DNA of 63,181 nucleotides, the filler included, from Octopus bimaculoides (Eukaryota), in assembly GCF_001194135.2 (NCBI RefSeq). It is 4 parts of 4 records of this genome, joined end to end, with 100 filler letters (N's around TTAATTAATTAA, not from the genome) between each part and the next. Parts side by side here need not be neighbours in the genome. Positions count along the whole stretch, not along the records: positions 1 to 25,172 come from NC_068986.1; 3 more parts are not named here. One strand, written 5' to 3'. A program made the translations under genes and the position numbers. The notes beneath the pieces are model-generated. The model ran no database searches. It had not been told where the DNA came from and saw only the letters and a program-made list of their open reading frames with translations. Numbering within the stretch: position 1 is the stretch's first letter; every line of letters begins with the position of its first letter. Positions 3,085-23,541 of this stretch are shown here, one piece after another.

Positions 3085-3247
3085 ACCACAGGACTTGTTC
3101 TTCGTAAGCCTAGTCCTTCTTCTATCGGTCTCTTTTGCCGAACCGCTAAGTTATGAAGACTTAAGCAATGGTAGGGAGACAAACTTAGACACAAAGATAC
3201 ACATACATGAATAAACACACACGCACACGCACAAACACACACACACA

Positions 3248-6649: not shown

Positions 6650-7997
6650 TTAGGCTGTCAAGAAAGTTCTTGCGGTTTTTAACCTTTAAATTCAGATGCA
6701 CATATCTCCGTTCAAACAAAACTATATTAATCGAAATATACACCATCAGAATCAACAAAGTTTTGCTAATGAGAAACAAGTTTATTTATGCCAGTAGCGT
6801 AAAAATCCTGCTTTCTGGTAGCGATGAAGTCGTTGAAGGCATGTTTGGCATCGTCTTGGTTTTTGAAGCATTTCTCACGCAGGAAGTTGTCGAGATCCGT
6901 GAAAAAGTGGTAGTCGGTAGGCGTGAGGTCTGGTGAGTATAGCAGATGAGACAGAGTTTCATAGCCCAATTCGTTCAATTTCTGAAGGGTTAGTTGTGCG
7001 ACGTGCGACCGAGCGCTGTCGTGGAGAAGAACTGGTCCTTTTCTATTGACCAATGCTAACTGTTGTTGTCGGAGTTTCTTATGCATTTCATCTANNNNNN
7101 NNNNNNNNNNNNNNNNNNNNNNNNNNNNNNNNNNNNNNNNNNNNNNNNNNNNNNNNNNNNNNNNNNNNNNNNNNNNNNNNNNNNNNNNNNNNNNNNNNNN
7201 NNNNNNNNNNNNNNNNNNNNNNNNNNNNNNNNNNNNNNNNNNNNNNNNNNNNNNNNNNNNNNNNNNNNNNNNNNNNNNNNNNNNNNNNNNNNNNNNNNNN
7301 NNNNNNNNNNNNNNNNNNNNNNNNNNNNNNNNNNNNNNNNNNNNNNNNNNNNNNNNNNNNNNNNNNNNNNNNNNNNNNNNNNNNNNNNNNNNNNNNNNNN
7401 NNNNNNNNNNNNNNNNNNNNNNNNNNNNNNNNNNNNNNNNNNNNNNNNNNNNNNNNNNNNNNNNNNNNNNNNNNNNNNNNNNNNNNNNNNNNNNNNNNNN
7501 NNNNNNNNNNNNNNNNNNNNNNNNNNNNNNNNNNNNNNNNNNNNNNNNNNNNNNNNNNNNNNNNNNNNNNNNNNNNNNNNNNNNNNNNNNNNNNNNNNNN
7601 NNNNNNNNNNNNNNNNNNNNNNNNNNNNNNNNNNNNNNNGACTCTCGTCACTGCTACGAAATTTCTTGAACCACTATTGTGCTGTACGTTCATTAGTGGT
7701 TCCTGGGCCAAACGCTTCGTTGATATCGCGAGCTGTTTTAGCAGCTTCTCGGCCTAGCTTGAACTGGAATAACAAAATTGTGCGAATTTGCTTTTTGTCC
7801 ATGTTGTATTCAACGTTCCGGAAAATGGCCTAATTATTCAAAAAGAAAAAGAGTAACATAATTAGATAGAGCGAAAAGCGGGCTTTAAAATGATATAATG
7901 ATATATAAAGTCAAAGTAATTTATCGAAAATTAATTTGAAAATACATAATTTAAAACCAAAATTTAAAATTCCGCAAGAACTTTCTTGACAACCTAA
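6650..7997 (-). mobile_element. Complete-ended mariner (cecropia/Hsmar1-like subfamily); transposase pseudogene with central N gap
   Basis: TIRs TTAGGCTGTCAAGAAAGTTCTTGCGG (6650) and CCGCAAGAACTTTCTTGACAACCTAA (ends 7997), each flanked by TA. N-terminus from 7802: MDKKQIRTILLFQFKLGREAAKTARDINEAFGPGTTNERTAQ*WFKKF. C-terminus LLHDSARSH..YSPDLTPTDYHFF. Confidence 0.95.
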
Positions 7998-8808: not shown

Positions 8809-8863
8809 TACACATACATACATACATACATACATACATACATACATACATACATACATACAT
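8809..8863. repeat. (TACA)n microsatellite at 5' junction of R4/Dong LINE
   Basis: Direct reading; about 13 units. Confidence 0.95.
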
Positions 8864-10143
8864 GGCCCACAATGTGTTTGCAACGCCAGTACTCATACCA
8901 ACATTTAGACTGCTTGACTGGATGCTTGATGAGATCCGATCCATCGGTGTGAAAACCCACAAAATACTAACAAGCACACACAGTTTCTACATAAATAGTG
9001 ACGTAGATCACCTCTTTTTAAAACGGAAGCAAGGCGGCAAAGGCATAACATCGATCCAAAATACCTTTGAACGTCGTTTCATATCCCTTCGATTTCATCT
9101 TTTAACCACTAAGTGTCGAAGTGAAACCCTTGACCAAGTTTGCATACATGAGGCTGATAACATCATAAGACTTGGAAGGCAGCTCCTTGAGCAGCATTCC
9201 TTGTCTGATGACCTTAAATACATGCCCAAAGAAGTCGCATGTCTCTATCGCAACGTATAAGATGAAAAAATGAACGTATATTAGTAGAAGACCATGCATG
9301 GATATGTTAGTAGAAAGCTCCGAGATGATAGTAACATTGATCACCAAACCAGTCTATCATGGACCAACAACCGGATTTCTACCTCCCACTTCCAAGGGTG
9401 CGCGTTTGAAATCAAGGAACAGGCAATATCAACCAAATAGCTGATGCACAAAAGGGACAGAGATGTGGGAAAAACAGTAAAATGTTCCAACCGATGCAGA
9501 CTTTGTGGAGTTCACACCAAAGATGTCACCCACTTCATAAGCAGTTGTCCGAAAATGTAATCACGTAATTATCTACCGATGAGACATGATGTTGTAGCTA
9601 GGACACTGTATAACGAGATCCGTCGAAAGGATAAACCTGAGAACAAAGAAATAAGAACCCACAGTGTGGTAGAAAGGATAGCCACTCACGATAAAAAGGA
9701 GTATTGGTGGAATGTTCCAATGAGAATCTCAATAAAATGTAAGCACAACAGATCTGATATAATGATTTGTGATAGAGAAGAGAAACTGTGTACGGTTGTG
9801 GAAATTAGCTGCCCAGCGGATGTTTACATAAAGCTGAAGATCAGTGAAAAAGAGTTATTGAGAAATCTGCAGTTACTCTATTTAGATTATAAGTTCAGGT
9901 TTATAACTCTGATTATTGGAGTACTGGGATATGTAACACACTGCTTAAATACTAATCTTGAGAAATTAGGCTTCTCAAAACCAGAACGAAGAAAGCTGAT
10001 TCGAAGACTACAGATCCACTCCATCACAGGAACTGTAAAAATCTATCAAACTTTCCGGAAGTTTATCATTTTAGTATATATGAGCATGTCTAGATAGGCA
10101 AGTTTATGCATAAGAAGACATAAAACAAAACACAAATCTGCAC
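8864..10143 (+). mobile_element. 5'-truncated R4/Dong-clade non-LTR retrotransposon (RT thumb, CCHC, restriction-like endonuclease, 3' UTR)
   Basis: AHNVFATPVLIPTF..SDVDHLFLKRKQGGKGI (post-RT region); CRLCGVHTKDVTHFISSC knuckle at ~9495; RHD motif at 9582; HNRSDIMICD..VVEISCP (degenerate PD-D/E nuclease); GTVKIYQTF terminus. Several stops and frameshifts. Confidence 0.9.
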
Positions 10144-10369: not shown

Positions 10370-11336
10370 CGAGGTGGTTTCAAAGAGTTCTTGGACTAGT
10401 TCTGTAGCGCGCCAACCGATGGCAGTATACGATTGCGTGCGTAGCGAGAACTTGCAGTGACCTTTATGAGGCAGTGTGCCGAGTGACACCGCTGTTTACT
10501 TCGCAAGTTGTGAAATTTGTGTTTTTGTGATCATCTGTATGCTGTATTCTGCTATTTTTGTCATGGACAAGAAGTTAAAACAAAGATCCAACGTGAAATT
10601 TTGCGTTAAACTTGGTAAATCTGCAACAGAGGCATTGAGTATGGTTCGGCAAGCTTACGGCGATGAGGCAATGGGTCATAAGCAATGTTTTCGTGGGATC
10701 ATCACGGTGACGGGAGTTGGGTCTACGGCTATGACCCTGAAACGAAGCAGCAGTCACCACAATGGAAGAGTTCTTCATCTCCACGACCGAAGAAAGCAGG
10801 ACAGAGCCGCAGATCAACCAAGAGCATGCTCATCGTGTTTTTCGACATCCACGACATTGTGCAGGGCCAGATCGTCAATCGACAGTTGTACTGTGGCGTT
10901 TTGAAGCGTTTGAGGGAGGACATTCGGCGAAAGCGATCTATGGAGTGCGAAGAATTGGATTCTTCACGACACCCTGTCATCGAGATCTCGTCACTCGTGA
11001 GTTTCTCGCCGAAAACAACATGGTATCGCTTCCGCACTTGCCCTGTTCGTCAGACTTAGCACCTACAGATTTCCATCTCTTCTCTAAGATGAAAATGTAG
11101 CTAAAAATCGTCGCCATTTTAACACCGTTGTCTAGATCCAGAGCGAATCGCAGAAGGTCCTCGACTCACTTCCGGAAAACGACTTCCAGGCCGGATTCCA
11201 AGAGTGGCAGGAACGCTGTGACCGGAGTATTGCTGTGCAAGGTAACTATTTCGAAGGACATAATGTTAAAACTTAGTTAAATAAGTTATTTTCTTATTAA
11301 ATATAACCAGTCCAGGAACCTTTTGATATAATCTCG
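10370..11336 (+). mobile_element. Internally deleted mariner (irritans-like) with both TIRs, inserted at TA in a (TACA)n tract
   Basis: Left TA-CGAGGTGGTTTCAAAGAGTTCTTGGACTAG; right CCAGTCCAGGAACCTTTTGATATAATCTCG-TA. MDKKLKQRSNVKFCVKLGKSATEALSMVRQAYGDEAMGHKQCF jumps at ~10695 to GDGSWVYGYDPETKQQS; later CSSDLAPTDFHLF. Confidence 0.92.
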
Positions 11337-14230: not shown

Positions 14231-15237
14231 TAATTTCTGTTCTTTGTACATACTTATTTAAATTATTTTTGTATAGGTCTGCGAGAAAATATAATTACAG
14301 GAAAGCCTATAATAGACTTAATCCAATTAGTTGATAAAAACGTAACAAGTAGAAACACGTTACTCCTGTTGGATCGATCACTGAAGATCATTAACTGAAA
14401 CTTTCTCTCCACTGACTCACATACGTCATCAACATATGGTAACGTATACATATATTTACGCATTCATATATATATATATATATATATANNNNNNNNNNNN
14501 NNNNNNNNNNNNNNNNNNNNNNNNNNNNNNNNNNNNNNNNNNNNNNNNNNNNNNNNNNNNNNNNNNNNNNNNNNNNNNNNNNNNNNNNNNNNNNNNNNNN
14601 NNNNNNNNNNNNNNNNNNNNNNNNNNNNNNNNNNNNNNNNNNNNNNNNNNNNNNNNNNNNNNNNNNNNNNNNNNNNNNNNNNNNNNNNNNNNNNNNNNNN
14701 NNNNNNNNNNNNNNNNNNNNNNNNNNNNNNNNNNNNNNNNNNNNNNNNNNNNNNNNNNNNNNNNNNNNNNNNNNNNNNNNNNNNNNNNNNNNNNNNNNNN
14801 NNNNNNNNNNNNNNNNNNNNNNNNNNNNNNNNNNNNNNNNNNNNNNNNNNNNNNNNNNNNNNNNNNNNNNNNNNNNNNNNNNNNNNNNNNNNNNNNNNNN
14901 NNNNNNNNNNNNNNNNNNNNNNNNNNNNNNNNNNNNNNNNNNNNNNNNNNNNNNNNNNNNNNNNNNNNNNNNNNNNNNNNNNNNNNNNNNNNNNNNNNNN
15001 NNNNNNNNNNNNNNNNNNNNNNNNNNNNNNNNNNNNNNNNNNNNNNNNNNNNNNNNNNNNNNNNNNNNNNNNNNNNNNNNNNNNNNNNNNNNNNNNNNNN
15101 NNNNNNNNNNNNNNNNNNNNNNNNNNNNNNNNNNNNNNNNNNNNNNNNNNNNNNNNNNNNNNNNNNNNNNNNNNNNNNNNNNNNNNNNNNNNNNNNNNNN
15201 NNNNNNNNNNNNNNNNNNNNNNATATATATAGATAGA

Positions 15238-15335
<98 letters not shown>

Positions 15336-17005
15336 GATAAGATAGATAGGTATATGAATAATTATTTCTAAGATTCTTCTGAATCCTAGTACCTTAATGC
15401 TGAGGACATCTAGTGAGGGTCGAGATCTGCATATCTTTGTGCATACCATATACAAGCACACCTGTATATACCCATAATATATGGATATATTCATACACAT
15501 ACACATACAAATATACGCATACATGTAAATATAGATGTGCATAAAAATATATACTCTTGCATGCCGACATGTAGTTTCACTTTCGAATGTAAGTTCCATA
15601 TCCAACATAGGGAAGGTACCAGAAATGGTGTTTGCATAAAATAAGAACAAAGATGGGACAGTTGTTTCAGAAACGTTTTTCAGAAACGTTTTCTTATTAA
15701 TGAATAATTTGATTACATCATGGAAAAAGAAAACCGTTTTCTTCAGGTGAATTAAAAATTTAAAATTTGGACCCCTTNNNNNNNNNNNNNNNNNNNNNNN
15801 NNNNNNNNNNNNNNNNNNNNNNNNNNNNNNNNNNNNNNNNNNNNNNNNNNNNNNNNNNNNNNNNNNNNNNNNNNNNNNNNNNNNNNNNNNNNNNNNNNNN
15901 NNNNNNNNNNNNNNNNNNNNNNNNNNNNNNNNNNNNNNNNNNNNNNNNNNNNNNNNNNNNNNNNNNNNNNNNNNNNNNNNNNNNNNNNNNNNNNNNNNNN
16001 NNNNNNNNNNNNNNNNNNNNNNNNNNNNNNNNNNNNNNNNNNNNNNNNNNNNNNNNNNNNNNNNNNNNNNNNNNNNNNNNNNNNNNNNNNNNNNNNNNNN
16101 NNNNNNNNNNNNNNNNNNNNNNNNNNNNNNNNNNNNNNNNNNNNNNNNNNNNNNNNNNNNNNNNNNNNNNNNNNNNNNNNNNNNNNNNNNNNNNNNNNNN
16201 NNNNNNNNNNNNNNNNNNNNNNNNNNNNNNNNNNNNNNNNNNNATATATATATATATATATATATATAAAACCACCCATCCATCCATCCTCCGTATATGT
16301 GTGTGTCTGGTGAACTCCCAGGTATCATGAGCTCTAATTTCCAACTGAGTATACTGGGGCCTGGGGCAACATGAAGGAAGTGCTTTGCTGGAAGACTCCA
16401 TGTAAGAATCAAATGCATGGTCTAACAATGACAAGACTATCACTCTAGCCAATAGACCACACACTTTCACACCTTATATAAGGGTTGATTATATTCTAAA
16501 TAACAATCTTTCTCATTAACTATAAGTAAGTATGGTTGGACCAAATCTTACAGATAGTCCCGTATTTGATATACACGTAGATTCTTTAATATTTATGCTG
16601 TTTTTACAATGTATTTTGTGTATATATATTAGAATTGTATTTTACACACGTTCTTTTAACTGTCGTTTGATCATTTCTTTCGCTCTTTTATCTTAGGGCC
16701 CTGAAATTGTCACGAGGTATTCTTTTTCAATGACTAAGCTTAGGTTATATTTATTCCTCACGTAATTGTAAACTTGTAACTGAGTCTCTTCAATATCCCA
16801 GTAATTTCAAACACTGTCTTGTACTTAATATATAGAATAACTAATTAGAGATAGATAATATTAGTTTTTCTTTCACGTTTTCCTTCTTATGCTCTGACCC
16901 GATGTAGTTTGTACTACATCAAATATCTTATGTACCTTGTAATTCTAATATTTTAATGTTTTCATTATTTTTATTTTATTATTTCAATTCAAACATATTT
17001 CAGTG

Positions 17006-19915
17006 ATGTTGTTCCTGGATCTACTTCTTCTAATCAAGTTAACAGTGGGTGTGCACTGTTGGAAAACTTCCAATTTAACAAATAATAAGGATATGGTTGT
17101 TGCCAATAAGAATATATTAAAAACTCCTGCAAAAAAGAATACAACTATTTCAGACGGAGAGAAATATTCGAACAGGTTGCTAAACAACCGGAAAAGGATT
17201 TCTTCAGATTTGGAAATATTTAGAAATATCTACGTAGATATGGATATACACAATATAAAACAGAAGCAATTAATTTTCGAAATATTTTCTAAATTCTGCA
17301 GAAAACATATGAATTGTCAAAGAAACAATTTAGATCAAAGATCAACTGAGGAAAAGATATATTTTTGTAAAAAACAACTGCAAAATAAAGTGCTAAAGTC
17401 TTATAATGGCATCAAAGACGACTTGCAAGTAAAACCAGTCAATAAACAAATGATATATTTTCTAACAAAGAACAGCCAAAATCTTGTGGAAAGATTTCAG
17501 GCTTATTATAAATATAATTGGACTTTTCAGATTTGTTCTATATTTACTGCAATGCTCAACAACAACTTCCGAAATCTTAAATTTAAAGTACAGGATTTCG
17601 GCACTGCCAAATCAACGCTGAAGCTTTATTTTTTAGATTTAAAATTTTTGGAAAACAGAGCAAAATATATGCTAGACTTCGATTTGATGCTAAAGAAGAA
17701 ACAAAATATCAACTCAGACTCTGAAATCCATCCTGGGTTACCGGATTTGGAAGAAGTATTACCAAATAATGTAACAAACTTTCTGGTGACAGAAGGTAGC
17801 AAGAATATAAAACCACCCGAATATTCCAAGATCAGTATGGCACCCGAAAGTCATGAACACATTAGACTTACAGATACAAAGGTATTTGTAGATGATGCTG
17901 GTAGCAAACACTTACCAGAGCATACAACACTCGGTATAATAGAAGCGTCCTCGAGTAATAACGTGAAATTTATTGTCAATCCTGGTTCACCTGTAAACTC
18001 CCCAGGAAATACTAACAAGCTTTCTACTGGAAAAACCTCTCAAGCGTCTAGTTGTTCATTTATAACACGCTTACTCACAATTCACAAACCTATTCACCAT
18101 AGTTCTATTCAGATCAATAAGAATCCTTCATTAATGTTTACTAGTAACCATGCAACAGTTCTGACATCGAATAAGGAACAACTGATATCTGCTCTTCAAT
18201 ATAAAATAACTCTACCAAAATTATTGACACTTTTATTTCGGAAGGAAATTTGGAATTTTAAAGAAACAGCATTCATTCCGAAACACAACTACGAAGTAAT
18301 CTTATTGCCAAAGTATTCTTCCCTAGTTTCAAATATTTTAATTCGTTTTGGATTTCGAACGAAGTATATATCGTTCATACTGGTCAACTGTAGATCTAAT
18401 CTCGTTCATCGAAAACCAAAAGTATTTTGGTATTGCAAAAGTTTCAGATATGCAGATCGTCAAATCAAGAAAAAATCAAAATACATAACTATCTTAATCA
18501 CTGGTAGATTCTTAGTTCTTTTTCCAATAACTCGTTTAATTTTCAAATATAACACCATTCCATTTATTTCTTGGACAAATTCGTACTCAAATTTTCAGAA
18601 ACCAGTTGGAAACAATTCTCCATTCCGGACTAGTCAATGTAAATTTTCAATCAATTTATTATTACTTCATTATAGATTAAAAGTTTGTCGAATCAAGTAT
18701 TTAGAGGAAATATTTTCTTCGTTCACCGGCAGAAAATTATTATTTAATGCTAAGTCAACTAATTCTGCTCTTATTCACAAATTGATAAAAAGGGATTTAA
18801 AAGACAGTCAGCAGTTAACATCACAAAAGACGAAACAGTCTTTTTCTAACGCGTCCAACGACCCAACCAATACAGATTTGATAACTTCGTCCTTGATTCA
18901 CTCCTCAGCTGTGGTTACATCAAAAGAATCCACAACACAATTGCGTTCTTCAAAGGAAACAATTTTGGGGTTTTCTAATATTACCGAAATACCAAAGCAG
19001 TTGGAGAATGTTAATTCCTCAACGGTAAATTTGACACAAGCTGTTGATGTAAAGAAAACATTTAACATGGTAGATATTATAATTCAACCAGCGATTTTAT
19101 TTACTGGAATAATTGGCAACATCATCTCTGTTCTTGTCTTTAGATCGACAGAGTTTAAAAACGAAGTGGCTTTTTATATACCTGCGTTCCTTTCTACAGT
19201 TGATATGTTTACAGGTATAATTGTATTCTTTGACAGCGAATTTTACATTTATTTCTTTGGAGGGAAAATATCGAACCTAAATTTTACCATGTGCAAGACA
19301 TTTCATTATCTGAAAGTTTTTGTCAAATCTACATCGGCTTGGGCAATTGCTATGATGTCAGCAGAACGGTTTATTGCGGTCAAGTTTCCATTCAAAGCTA
19401 AAATCTACATCACAAAATACAAAGTTATGACTGCAGTGGTTGTTTGCTTTCTAGTTGAGATAATGCTTAATTTCTCTCAGCTCGGCATGAGGTCCTATGA
19501 AAATGGCCAATGCATTAAATCTAACCAAAATCGTAATATTTTGGTTATACTAATAACGATGCTTAACGGGTGGCTTATTCCAACATCAACCACTGTCATA
19601 CTGAATATATTAATTATCATCCATCTGAGGCGACAGAGCAGGATTCGAAATACACTCGCACGTGAAGATAGAAGTCAACAATTTCGACAGATTAACGTCA
19701 TGCTTTTTACCATAATACTTTGCAAATTTATCTTTGAATTACCACTAATGATACAACATGTATTAGGGTGGGTTCGCTATGGATTAAGTGATCTTTTAGA
19801 TAGTGTATTTATGGCCCTTGGTTTTGCACAGCATTCTATAAATGCCTTTTTGTACAGTTTTGTTTCAAAATCTTTCCGTTCTGTAATTTTGAGCTGTTTT
19901 CGAAACAAAAACTAA
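17006..19915 (+). CDS. Class A (rhodopsin-like) GPCR, peptide/FMRFamide-receptor-like orphan type, with signal peptide and ~690-aa N-terminal region; single coding exon, 969 aa
   Basis: 2.9-kb open frame in AT-rich DNA. ATG at 17006 (the track starts at GTG 17003), just after a pyrimidine-rich ..TTTCAG acceptor-like site. Hydrophobic leader MLFLDLLLLIKLTVGVHC. TM1 TGIIGNIISVLVF, TM2 FLSTVDMF, TM3 CKTF..MSAERFIAVKFP, ECL2 Cys (GQC), TM5 GWLIP, TM6 FELP, TM7 HSINAFLY, helix 8 SKSFR. Confidence 0.92.
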   Translation: MLFLDLLLLIKLTVGVHCWKTSNLTNNKDMVVANKNILKTPAKKNTTISDGEKYSNRLLNNRKRISSDLEIFRNIYVDMDIHNIKQKQLIFEIFSKFCRKHMNCQRNNLDQRSTEEKIYFCKKQLQNKVLKSYNGIKDDLQVKPVNKQMIYFLTKNSQNLVERFQAYYKYNWTFQICSIFTAMLNNNFRNLKFKVQDFGTAKSTLKLYFLDLKFLENRAKYMLDFDLMLKKKQNINSDSEIHPGLPDLEEVLPNNVTNFLVTEGSKNIKPPEYSKISMAPESHEHIRLTDTKVFVDDAGSKHLPEHTTLGIIEASSSNNVKFIVNPGSPVNSPGNTNKLSTGKTSQASSCSFITRLLTIHKPIHHSSIQINKNPSLMFTSNHATVLTSNKEQLISALQYKITLPKLLTLLFRKEIWNFKETAFIPKHNYEVILLPKYSSLVSNILIRFGFRTKYISFILVNCRSNLVHRKPKVFWYCKSFRYADRQIKKKSKYITILITGRFLVLFPITRLIFKYNTIPFISWTNSYSNFQKPVGNNSPFRTSQCKFSINLLLLHYRLKVCRIKYLEEIFSSFTGRKLLFNAKSTNSALIHKLIKRDLKDSQQLTSQKTKQSFSNASNDPTNTDLITSSLIHSSAVVTSKESTTQLRSSKETILGFSNITEIPKQLENVNSSTVNLTQAVDVKKTFNMVDIIIQPAILFTGIIGNIISVLVFRSTEFKNEVAFYIPAFLSTVDMFTGIIVFFDSEFYIYFFGGKISNLNFTMCKTFHYLKVFVKSTSAWAIAMMSAERFIAVKFPFKAKIYITKYKVMTAVVVCFLVEIMLNFSQLGMRSYENGQCIKSNQNRNILVILITMLNGWLIPTSTTVILNILIIIHLRRQSRIRNTLAREDRSQQFRQINVMLFTIILCKFIFELPLMIQHVLGWVRYGLSDLLDSVFMALGFAQHSINAFLYSFVSKSFRSVILSCFRNKN

Positions 19916-22900
19916 GTAAAGACAACATATTAAAAACAAACGCAATGAAATATTTAGTATTCTTTTGTGTAGTGGAAATAACTGTTTGCTGACCTGAAAT
20001 ATTTGCAGTGGGTTTGTGTATACGCTGGTATTAAATCGCTGAAAATTATATATTGTTGTCCAGTTTAGAATATGATATGATTGTCATAAATTCAAGGCAT
20101 ATATTGCTTTGTAGTCGTGAGTTAATTAGTAAAACGTTGTGATGAAATTCTGTTACAGTAGAAGTAATGTTGCGATGACAAGGTTTTGATATGATAATGA
20201 AGCGATTGTGATGTCCTACTGGATATATCAAGGTTGTAGAGAAGGAATCTTCAGGTATTCAATTATTGCCAGAAAAGGGCAACTAAAATATTACTAAAAC
20301 ATAAAAATAAACCTTATAATGAAAGGAAGCAATAGGTAACTGCAGTAAACTTTAAAACGAGCCTGATTCTGATAAACTTTGACGTCTGCAATAACGTTTG
20401 AAAATGATGACTGATAAAATGTAAAAAAATGTGATAGGATCAGTTTAAAATACATAAAGAAATGCAAGACTTGCGGTTGTGATTGCTGAAAAATAAGTGA
20501 GCAAGATAATTAGGAGAACATAATTGAGAAAAAGAATTACAGAAAATTAAATGAATTTGAAGTCATTTTTCAACAGATTCAATATATCATCGATTACTCC
20601 AGTTCACCTAGATATAAGATGAACAGGAGTAATAGATGTTATATCATTGCAAAATAGATCAATGAAAATCTTCAATGATATCAGGTAATTTTGCATGGTT
20701 ATTCTTTGTGAAGAGCAACTTAATCTTTCTCAAATTACAGCCTACCAAATTGAAAAAGGAAAACAAATTAGATAATGTAACCCTTTATTCGTAGTATCTC
20801 AAAGAAGGACCGCATGATCTTAACTGGAGCTAGACAACAACAACAAAAAAGATATTTTGTCAAGCCCATGGGTAGTTGACTACAGCAAGGAAGAATTATA
20901 AACAGCTCTTCAATGTTTTAGTTATATGTTTCGTATGGGCTATCTGAAAACCTGCGCCAGCAATGATATCCGACAAAGTAATCTACTAATCACCGTGAAG
21001 AGGAACAGTAATGATAATACAATAGCGTTCAGATTACGTAGATGTGCTAAAGCTACATGCAATAGATATGAGTTTACTGTAGCATCAGACTTACACCTTA
21101 ACAGCAACACAAAAATCAAGGAACTTTATAAGGAAGACACATGAAAGTAATACCTAGGAGTGAAGGGAAGAGATGACATAGAGGATGTAAAACTTGTATT
21201 TTTGGCTGTGAAGTTTTGTATTACTGTGATCAGTCACCAAGATGGCGCATCGCTGCAATAGTTTTGTTGTCATCCATTCATTCCAAATAGCTAATAAGCA
21301 GGTGAAATTTAAAGGTATCCTTTTCATCTTTCTTAGATAAATTAGACAATAAAAAAAATTCTTCTTAAATGTAACGCAATCCTTAAATAATGTAAGACAT
21401 ATATCAAAAGAGTTTTGTATGCTGTGGTAGGAGCTGATGTGACATCTCCACGTAATTGCTGTCGTACCATTTGCAACTTCTTGTAAGTCTGTGGTAACAG
21501 ACTGATAATTTCGCTAGTTTTCAATTGCTTATTATTAGTAACAATGTTTGTGCCAAGCTGATTTAGGCTCATTCGGTTCCTTAGCCAATAGTGCTCGGGC
21601 TCCTATCTGTAATAAGACCGAATTAGACACTGAGAAATATTTCGATGCATTAAAAAAACAAGTAAAAAGGCACCTCTTTTACGTCGGTAAATACGGCACA
21701 CAGGAGACATTCAAATACTACTGCAAAGATAATCAAATCATGGACTAAGACAAATGAAATACTGTAGAAATTCAAATACATTCAAACGCATCAGATACTG
21801 TACTGTACTATTAATAAACTATTGTCAATAAAAACATCATATTGTTGGTATTTCTCTTTCGATATTGTGTGGTGGTGGTAATCAGTGTCGACCTGATATT
21901 CTGTGCCGACATTATATTCTGTATGATATTCTATATTTTGCGCTCTTGGAATTTTATTGAACAGCTTGATGTAGGACATTTAAGTGACTCTGATTGCATA
22001 GTATCTGGAAAGATTTCTGGACGGCGAACAAGTTAACGTTTATCAGGTACGTTTTCTCATTTACGGAGCAATAGTCCTCGATCAGTCCGTATAGGCGCTT
22101 ATTGTTCTTTACCAATCAGTCAATGTGGTTGCTGATAAATCGATTCTTCCATTCTACAGAGGAGTAGGGTTGGAAAAAGTAAGTTCCGGGTGTTGACGAA
22201 GATCAAAGGAACAATCTATTCATGGGGACTTTCTTCATAGGATTTATGGACTACTCTTGGAAATCCCGAGCTTGACAGTTGTGCAGGCTGAAGTGTGGAG
22301 TAGACTATACAGACATAATGGTGTCGTCAGCCGGGTTTCCTTAAGGTACATACAAACTGACAAAATGGTTCTGCACATAATCATTCAATGTCAGAGTATT
22401 GCTATTTTGTAGTTTTATGTTGAATTGCTTTTGACGAATGCAGGATTGATCAGACTTCTAACCAAATTCATTTTGACAATTACTTCATAAACCTCCTTTG
22501 GCAAAACAGGTTGAATGTAGATAAGACTGAAAAGGTCAAGATTTTCTTCTGCAGCATCATCTTTTTAAAGTTCACTTGGATAAGAAAGTAATAGCGGGAA
22601 GTATTGTCTTCCAGTGAATTTATTGAAAGGTAGATGAGAGTGGCGAGAATTGCATACATACCTCAACGGTCTTACGTCCAGCATGCACCTGTACGTCGGA
22701 GAACATAAGTAAGCGACGGAACTTGCTCAGGTTAATCTTGGAACAGTAGCGATTAGTCATTTTTTGTGAATAAACACTGAGTGGCGTGAAAAGAACTTGA
22801 ATAAAAGCACAAAATAATACTCATGAATACTCTATGGCTGAAATACATAATCAGGTGGCTGGCTGCTAGTATACATAAGGCAGTGGTCCAAGAAATTTTA

Positions 22901-23541
22901 ATTGATTAAAAATAGGTTGTTGGATAATGCAGTTTGAAATAAGTCTGAGATTGGCAGCACGCGACAAGTGCGGATAATTTTTCTCTTCACCGCAAGTGAG
23001 TAAAATTCTGTATATATATATATATNNNNNNNNNNNNNNNNNNNNNNNNNNNNNNNNNNNNNNNNNNNNNNNNNNNNNNNNNNNNNNNNNNNNNNNNNNN
23101 NNNNNNNNNNNNNNNNNNNNNNNNNNNNNNNNNNNNNNNNNNNNNNNNNNNNNNNNNNNNNNNNNNNNNNNNNNNNNNNNNNNNNNNNNNNNNNNNNNNN
23201 NNNNNNNNNNNNNNNNNNNNNNNNNNNNNNNNNNNNNNNNNNNNNNNNNNNNNNNNNNNNNNNNNNNNNNNNNNNNNNNNNNNNNNNNNNNNNNNNNNNN
23301 NNNNNNNNNNNNNNNNNNNNNNNNNNNNNNNNNNNNNNNNNNNNNNNNNNNNNNNNNNNNNNNNNNNNNNNNNNNNNNNNNNNNNNNNNNNNNNNNNNNN
23401 NNNNNNNNNNNNNNNNNNNNNNNNNNNNNNNNNNNNNNNNNNNNNNNNNNNNNNNNNNNNNNNNNNNNNNNNNNNNNNNNNNNNNNNNNNNNNNNNNNNN
23501 NNNNNNNNNNNNNNNNNNNNNATAACAACAACAACAACAAC

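Follow-up and report, generated by a model that had tools for sequence, protein, structure and literature searches.

The ectodomains of LGR-type G-protein-coupled receptors (GPCRs) of class A, i.e. the glycoprotein hormone and relaxin receptors and LGR4-6, consist of leucine-rich repeats (LRR), with or without LDLa, and of a Cys-rich hinge; their conservation is strong. GPR37, GPR37L1 and the endothelin B receptor carry long, largely unstructured N-termini of about 100–260 residues that are proteolytically shed and recognisably conserved among vertebrates. The N-termini of protease-activated receptors (PARs) are short, with a cleavage site near the first transmembrane segment (TM1). Lineage-specific expansions of class A GPCRs that are candidate chemosensory receptors have been described in Lophotrochozoa and in cephalopods (PMC11886862, PMC6408891), and the adhesion GPCRs (class B2) are expanded in octopus (PMC6408891). 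The locus described here belongs to Octopus bimaculoides (assembly GCF_001194135.2) and lies in a window of 63,181 nt, filler included, that joins four parts of this genome, positions 1–25,172 coming from NC_068986.1. Its complete open reading frame (ORF; 17006–19915, + strand) codes for a class A GPCR that is divergent and carries a long N-terminal extension. It is probably an octopod-restricted orphan receptor translated from position 17006, the extension of which would be a non-globular tail constrained only to keep its frame open.

This receptor resembles the lophotrochozoan and Srw-type families in its rhodopsin-fold seven-transmembrane (7TM) domain, its marginal Srw match, its fast evolution, its few or no one-to-one orthologues and its single coding exon. 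It differs from them by an orphan extension of about 650 residues, a trait that has not been described for these families; nor is a tandem cluster seen, the 25 kb that surround it containing no paralogue. As in LGR-type receptors, a class A 7TM domain follows a signal peptide (putative here) and several hundred residues of ectodomain; unlike theirs, the octopus extension has no detectable LRR or LDLa, some of its cysteines are not conserved and its sequence drifts neutrally. The best functional analogy may be with GPR37, GPR37L1 and the endothelin B receptor, in which a signal peptide and a long non-globular tail with basic processing sites precede an orphan- or peptide-type core, as may be the case here, although the extension shares no sequence similarity with their tails and any cleavage of it is hypothetical. 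A very long N-terminus before the 7TM domain also recalls adhesion GPCRs, but the core is of the 7tm_1 and not the 7tm_2 type and neither GAIN/GPS nor adhesion domains were found. The class A core and conserved basic N-terminal sites are likewise reminiscent of PARs, whose N-terminus provides the agonist, but the basic sites lie here 450–620 residues away from TM1.

The open reading frame and its receptor core

A single ORF (17003/17006–19915) encodes 969 amino acids counted from the first ATG and ends at a TAA stop (19913–19915). As an in-frame TAA at 16946–16948 closes the frame 19 codons upstream, the ATG at 17006 is the earliest ATG in frame. The 687 N-terminal codons are free of stops. 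As the five other frames of the same DNA have 25–55 each, this frame is open well beyond chance, as had been argued for the roughly 2-kb extension from the sequence-only reading. The same reading described the gene as intronless, which is true of the coding frame and extends no further than it.

Residues 707–950 match the Pfam family 7tm_1 (PF00001; E=3.6e-15, 56.6 bits for a cut-off of 30.5) along profile positions 4–260 of 260, and a match to Srw, a nematode chemoreceptor profile, is marginal (24.5 bits for a cut-off of 22.2). A search of the PDB returned 159 class A chains at E<=0.01, the best of which, aminergic and peptide receptors (~1e-10), are all confined to residues ~680–965. From these matches and an alignment with 5-HT2B, the core including helix 8 can be placed at residues 691–959 (19076–19882, + strand). 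Kyte-Doolittle peaks correspond to TM1, 2, 4, 5 and 6, and TM3 and TM7 were placed from the full-length 5-HT2B alignment. This alignment also locates GN at 704–705 (1.50), D2.50 at D733, P5.50 at P859, KSFR in helix 8, and C3.25 at C763, which pairs with C836 of the second extracellular loop, both Cys being kept in the orthologue described below. Other class A motifs are variant: ERF (787–789), a common variant of DRY, stands for the latter, Phe occupies position 4.50, NAFLY (946–950) replaces NPxxY, and position 6.48 lacks Trp, the nearest Pro sitting in FELP (910–913). These variant microswitches are common to the receptor and its orthologue and appear compatible with class A membership, any G-protein coupling being hypothetical. 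Judged from these matches and motifs, the core is a rhodopsin-class (class A) 7TM domain with its seven segments in class A order, in agreement with the assignment made at first sight.

Relatives of the receptor

No Pfam family other than 7tm_1 and the marginal Srw was found with the full protein, and four N-terminal pieces searched at E<=10 gave only noise; in particular, the search with these pieces gave no LRR, LDLa, EGF, GPS or GAIN domain. The five alternative reading frames, in which a decayed transposable element or a frame-shifted GPCR copy might have been hidden, gave only noise in Pfam. One PDB profile match of the extension, to THO7 (E=0.29), was dismissed and there was no other. 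A word-indexed search of 5.8 billion protein clusters found a sole relative of the N-terminal region, P0001 (950 aa), which also carries 7tm_1, and the only match of an exhaustive HMMER search against 1.84 billion representatives was P0002, a 319-aa fragment from the locus itself. Since a word-indexed search with the 7TM domain alone missed P0001 (80% identical), recall is incomplete and the absence of further matches is weak evidence. Within these Pfam, PDB and cluster searches, the extension matches no known domain family and has one orthologue as its only homologue, as expected from the initial description of a long ectodomain of unrecognised architecture.

P0001 (L001:404-3256) is 75% identical in amino acids to the octopus protein over its full length. 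Together with three allelic variants, it comes from five sequencing runs (SRR11869384, 85, 90, 91 and 94), in which contigs of ~5.36 kb from a related species are colinear with positions 16610–20700 of the window (83% identity). That these five contigs could be transcripts was considered and rejected, as all of them start in a GT microsatellite, lack a poly(A) and are colinear with genomic flanks.

Selection on the open frame

The extension can be divided into a leader (17006–17059), a first block (block 1; residues 21–235, 17066–17710), a linker (residues 236–390, 17711–18175), a second block (block 2; residues 391–590, 18176–18775) and a stalk (residues 591–688, 18776–19069), all on the + strand. 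The stalk ends at M688 (19067–19069); the 7TM domain had been expected to start around residue 690, at the ATG at 19067, which is residue 688.

The whole frame, N-terminal region and 7TM domain alike, is open in the orthologue. When the observed number of substitutions was placed randomly on the N-terminal region, following the mutation spectrum of either the flanks or the ORF, 13.6–14.7 stops were expected in the 688 N-terminal codons and none is observed (P~1e-6). Block 2 alone would be expected to have acquired 4.9 stops (none observed, P=0.007) and the stalk alone 1.6. Indels lead to the same result. All nine indels that distinguish the two species in the N-terminal region are multiples of 3, including the three of block 2, whereas only 5 of the 12 found in 1.18 kb of flanks are. 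Extrapolating from the flanks, 12.2 frameshifts would be expected in the N-terminal region and none is observed (P=5e-6), while in-frame indels are as numerous as expected (9 for 8.7). In the 7TM domain, neither in-frame indels (3.6 expected) nor frameshifts (5.0 expected) are found.

The position of internal methionines is also informative. In the orthologue, M688 is replaced by Leu and the last Met before TM1 is M447, the 220 residues next to TM1 being devoid of Met; the octopus protein has an internal Met at M377. Initiation at M377 or M447 would tolerate stops upstream, and as none exists, the frame appears to be read from far upstream. It can be concluded from this comparison of two species that the N-terminal region is translated, or at least obliged to stay open; the stops or frameshifts in orthologues that would have spoken against the extension are absent from the one orthologue available.

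Selection on the amino acid sequence

Raw dN/dS ratios (omega) calculated by the Nei-Gojobori (NG86) method are 0.73 for the whole N-terminal region (0.50 for block 1, 0.93 for the linker, 0.95 for block 2 and 0.79 for the stalk) and 0.46 for the 7TM domain. These ratios, which compare two species, were calibrated by simulating neutral evolution with only stop-creating changes removed. For the N-terminal region, the simulated neutral omega is 0.65 (flank spectrum) or 0.74 (ORF spectrum), hence a calibrated omega of 0.99–1.13, and none of the sub-blocks departs significantly from neutrality. The calibrated omega of residues 236–590 reaches 1.18–1.35, a non-significant excess. The mild constraint on block 1 that its raw omega suggested was withdrawn, as the neutral simulation itself gives only 0.58–0.74 with this mutation spectrum; the calibrated omega of block 1 (0.71–0.86) is not significantly below neutral. 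The 7TM domain behaves differently: its omega of 0.46 compares with a simulated neutral value of 0.68–0.82 (P=0.06 and 0.007), i.e. a calibrated omega of 0.56–0.67.

The distribution of changes over codon positions is consistent with these ratios. In the 7TM domain, changes at position 2 are half as numerous as at position 3, whereas no excess at position 3 is seen in the linker or in block 2. Codon-position periodicity is strong in the linker (P=3e-4) and the stalk (P=9e-5), which suggests a constraint on composition, not on sequence; block 2, like the flanks, has none (P=0.51). Nucleotide identity of the ORF is 86–87%, versus 79.5% for the upstream flank and 86.3% for the downstream one. The amino acid sequence of the extension thus appears to evolve essentially at the neutral rate, with an omega of about 1, while the 7TM domain is constrained.

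Organization of the extension

Among 60-nt windows of the locus, conservation peaks at the beginning of the ORF (96.7% identity for a mean of 85.6%). These 60 nt encode the start and the hydrophobic leader MLFLDLLLLIKLTVGVHC (Kyte-Doolittle H=1.79); from residue 1 to 20, every aligned residue is identical in the orthologue, which lacks I10. This leader is probably a signal peptide. Block 1 is rich in K, N and L (net charge +21) and is predicted to be all-helical. It includes islands of conservation (residues 63–93 and 157–182) and two conserved basic sites, NRKR (residues 61–64, 17186–17197) and KKK/KKR (residues 230–232), the former not being a furin R-X-K/R-R site, as the P4 Arg is missing. 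The linker, rich in S, T, P and N, is predicted to be coil. Block 2 is basic and hydrophobic (net charge +27) and resembles non-coding DNA in base composition, although it is open in both species. The S/T-rich stalk contains an island of conservation (residues 609–650) and four N-glycosylation sequons (N615, N658, N670 and N675), listed as NAS, NIT, NSS and NLT in the sequence-only reading and all kept in the orthologue; sequons N23 and N171 are likewise conserved. By this comparison, conservation within the extension is limited to the region of the start and leader, to some short islands and to the four TM1-proximal sequons.

The Cys-containing blocks noticed at first are both present, with cysteines at residues 98, 104, 121 and 177 in block 1 and 462, 477, 545 and 561 in block 2. 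Half of these eight are not kept in the orthologue: three in block 1 (98, 104 and 121) and one in block 2, which makes 4 unconserved Cys out of 10 in the N-terminal region, while two other Cys are present in the orthologue only. An additional TM segment at residues 494–512 was rejected, as the orthologue has a 5-aa deletion within the hydrophobic peak and the hydrophobicity computed by hand is near 0.6; the predicted topology is that of a leader and seven TM segments. Neither internal nor tandem repeats were found in the extension, nor any similarity to the rest of the 25 kb around it. AlphaFold2 gave no confident fold: the mean predicted local distance difference test score (pLDDT) is 27.8 for residues 1–687 (2-sequence alignment) and 37.2 for residues 19–240 (3 sequences). 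These low-confidence models show helices across block 1 (pLDDT 30–45), coil in the linker and the stalk, and mixed elements in block 2.

These data bear on the proposal that the extension is a folded, Cys-stabilised and novel ligand-binding domain. Such a domain is not supported by the sequence comparison: amino acid substitutions and in-frame indels have both accumulated as fast as under neutrality, four cysteines are not conserved, block 2 is aperiodic and the pLDDT is 28–37. A related view, which we consider unlikely, is that of a functional and fast-diversifying ectodomain, acting as a species-specific recognition or ligand-capture module or as the source of a cleaved or tethered ligand, in which an omega of about 1 would average purifying and positive selection. 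It would account for the strict maintenance of the ORF, for the three islands of conservation, for the retention of NRKR and KKK/KKR, for the non-significant excess of omega over residues 236–590 and for the helical nature of block 1 in every prediction. However, no N-terminal region differs significantly from the neutral simulation, in-frame indels are as frequent as in neutral DNA, and identical runs of 17–18 residues would arise by chance at 72% identity. The lack of conservation of 4 Cys out of 10, including three in block 1, and the presence of two others in the orthologue, the lack of both codon periodicity in block 2 and a confident fold, and the absence of the P4 Arg of a furin site from NRKR also argue against it.

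The public gene model and the start of the receptor

The sole entry for this locus in the public protein collection is P0002 (319 aa; 18956–19912, + strand), the full 969-aa product being absent from it. This model begins at E651, without Met, immediately after an AG (...TTCAAAG), and it probably misses about 650 codons. The closest 7TM relatives of the receptor, P0003 and P0004 (27–34% identity across less than half of the query), have acidic, S/T/N-rich and stalk-like N-terminal tails of ~95–110 residues. Compared with these tails of ~100 residues, the extra ~590 residues of the octopus protein look like a lineage-specific addition.

These observations could also be read as placing the upstream frame outside the receptor. 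The receptor exon would then start at the AG before 18956, its start codon being provided by a distant exon, and the 650 codons would belong to another product or isoform. Besides the start of P0002 and the short tails of P0003 and P0004, this reading can call on the stalk, in which the stops expected (1.6) are too few to prove continuity. It nevertheless leaves unexplained a conserved frame of 650 codons that enters the 7TM domain stop-free and in frame in both species. Furthermore, P0002 resembles a 5'-partial or homology-delimited call, there is no evident donor site or separate gene end, and a stand-alone upstream protein would have no homologue. Such a splicing scheme is distinctly improbable.

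Truncated alleles in the related species

Three of the five contigs of the related species (L002, L003 and L005) differ from the two intact ones (L001 and L004) by a 1-bp deletion, at about position 3147, that changes a T5 run to T4 at codon 915 of the orthologue. The product of the T4 allele ends in ...NSIL-stop and has 916 aa instead of 950, TM7 and helix 8 being lost. The other polymorphisms of the ORF among the five contigs, three non-synonymous and one synonymous, are all within the extension. The T4 form looks like a segregating loss-of-function allele, and the receptor seems to be dispensable in at least part of the population of this species. Lineage-specific class A receptors of cephalopods include truncated and pseudogenised ones, and the segregating frameshift found here recalls the truncated or pseudogene alleles of fast-turnover sensory receptor families (PMC11886862). 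That the gene is dying or non-functional, its intact frame in octopus being a leftover, is very improbable: the weak overall constraint apparent from the identities of the ORF and its flanks, the loss of TM7 in three samples out of five and the degenerate class A hallmarks (W4.50 changed to Phe, W6.48 absent, NPxxY changed to NAxxY) would fit such a decay, but neutral evolution of the complete ORF would be expected to bring ~19 stops and ~17 frameshifts, of which none has been fixed, the omega of the 7TM domain is significantly low with zero indels, and the variant motifs, being common to the orthologue, would be old and tolerated states.

A model for the receptor

The probable reading, i.e. 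an orphan class A GPCR translated from 17006 with an extension under open-frame-only constraint, can be summarized by the following model. The gene would be a single-coding-exon octopod gene whose translation starts at the ATG at 17006. The conserved leader, a putative signal peptide, would export ~670 residues to the extracellular side before TM1. Because the start codon and the leader sit upstream of the receptor core, any stop or frameshift in between would lose the receptor, and the extension would have to stay open, its amino acids being otherwise almost free to drift. The extension would most likely form a long tail or tether, basic, rich in S and T, N-glycosylated and for the most part non-globular, partly constrained at the leader, perhaps at the helical tip (residues 21–235), and at the glycosylated stalk by TM1. 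As in other class A receptors, ligand recognition would most likely take place within the 7TM bundle.

Several points weigh against this model. The core of the leader contains D5 and K11 and a basic n-region is missing, the signal peptide being predicted from hydrophobicity and conservation. The ectodomain would be strongly basic (net charge of about +50), which is unusual. Low AlphaFold2 confidence obtained from alignments of 2–3 sequences is uninformative, being neither a proof of disorder nor a support for a fold. As only two species are compared, an omega of about 1 could reflect either true neutrality or a mix of purifying and positive selection, and if the upstream flank (79.5% identity) is taken as the neutral standard, the dN of the N-terminal region is ~0.6 of neutral, i.e. 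weakly constrained. The five orthologous contigs, being genomic, carry no expression evidence, whether transcript, ribosome-profiling or proteomic. Lastly, the start of P0002 at E651, right after an AG, makes splicing into 18956 possible.

A 2-kb orphan frame that did not arise by chance and now drifts neutrally calls for an origin. It could stem from an ancestral ectodomain that has decayed but must still be read through. A broader proposal, which appears highly doubtful, is that the ~650-residue extension is a taxon-restricted coding sequence whose ancestor is not among known proteins, derived from such a decayed ectodomain or from non-coding DNA, that evolves under open-frame-only or diversifying selection and serves as a species-specific recognition or tether module on a sensory GPCR.

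Flanks of the gene and other features of the window

A T-rich tract with a terminal CAG (17001–17003) abuts the ATG (16960–17005, + strand). The ~12 bases that precede the ATG (CATATTTCAGTG, 16994–17005), CAG included, are identical in the orthologue, whereas the upstream flank as a whole is 79.5% identical. This tract may be the acceptor (3' splice site) for an intron of the 5' untranslated region (UTR). The downstream flank (19916–20700, + strand; L001 3257-4047), a candidate 3' UTR, is colinear with the orthologue; its identity (86.3%) is similar to that of the ORF and above that of the upstream flank. Given this conservation, it may be a 3' UTR, and it includes AATAAA/ATTAAA hexamers at 19929, 20030, 20306 and 20546. 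Past 20700, the orthologous contig (L001 4048-5362) stops aligning with the octopus sequence, as if one species had an insertion or deletion there, perhaps a repeat.

Elsewhere in the window, decayed fragments of mariner/Mos1-type transposases with Transposase_1 and HTH_48 Pfam matches are found at 2096–2590 and 10476–11100 (both + strand), the latter being spread over three overlapping frames. Two retroelement-like ORFs (8862–9260 and 9579–10097, + strand) have no Pfam match; the second has 23 relatives, the named ones coming from Octopus bimaculoides, O. vulgaris and Argonauta hians, which supports the octopod origin of this DNA. Runs of N that mark gaps in the assembly occupy positions 1029–1368, 2673–2833, 7095–7639, 14489–15222, 15778–16243 and 23026–23521, and several of them are edged by TA or TATC-type microsatellites. 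Long ORFs that cross these gaps are artefacts due to the translation of N as X.

Implications for octopus receptors

The public model is restricted to the 319 C-terminal residues, from E651, but by the evidence given above the coding frame of this receptor begins 1,950 nt upstream of it. Long N-termini may therefore be missed when octopus GPCRs are surveyed with models of this kind. The locus also provides a quantifiable case of opposite signals within a single extension: ~26 expected stops and frameshifts have all been removed, and amino acid changes and in-frame indels have accumulated neutrally. A conserved open frame is thus not equal to a conserved domain, and an essential domain located downstream may carry an orphan sequence with it. 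Should the extension prove functional, which is the less likely reading, class A receptors would have a new kind of ectodomain, and this in an animal noted for innovation in its sensory receptors.

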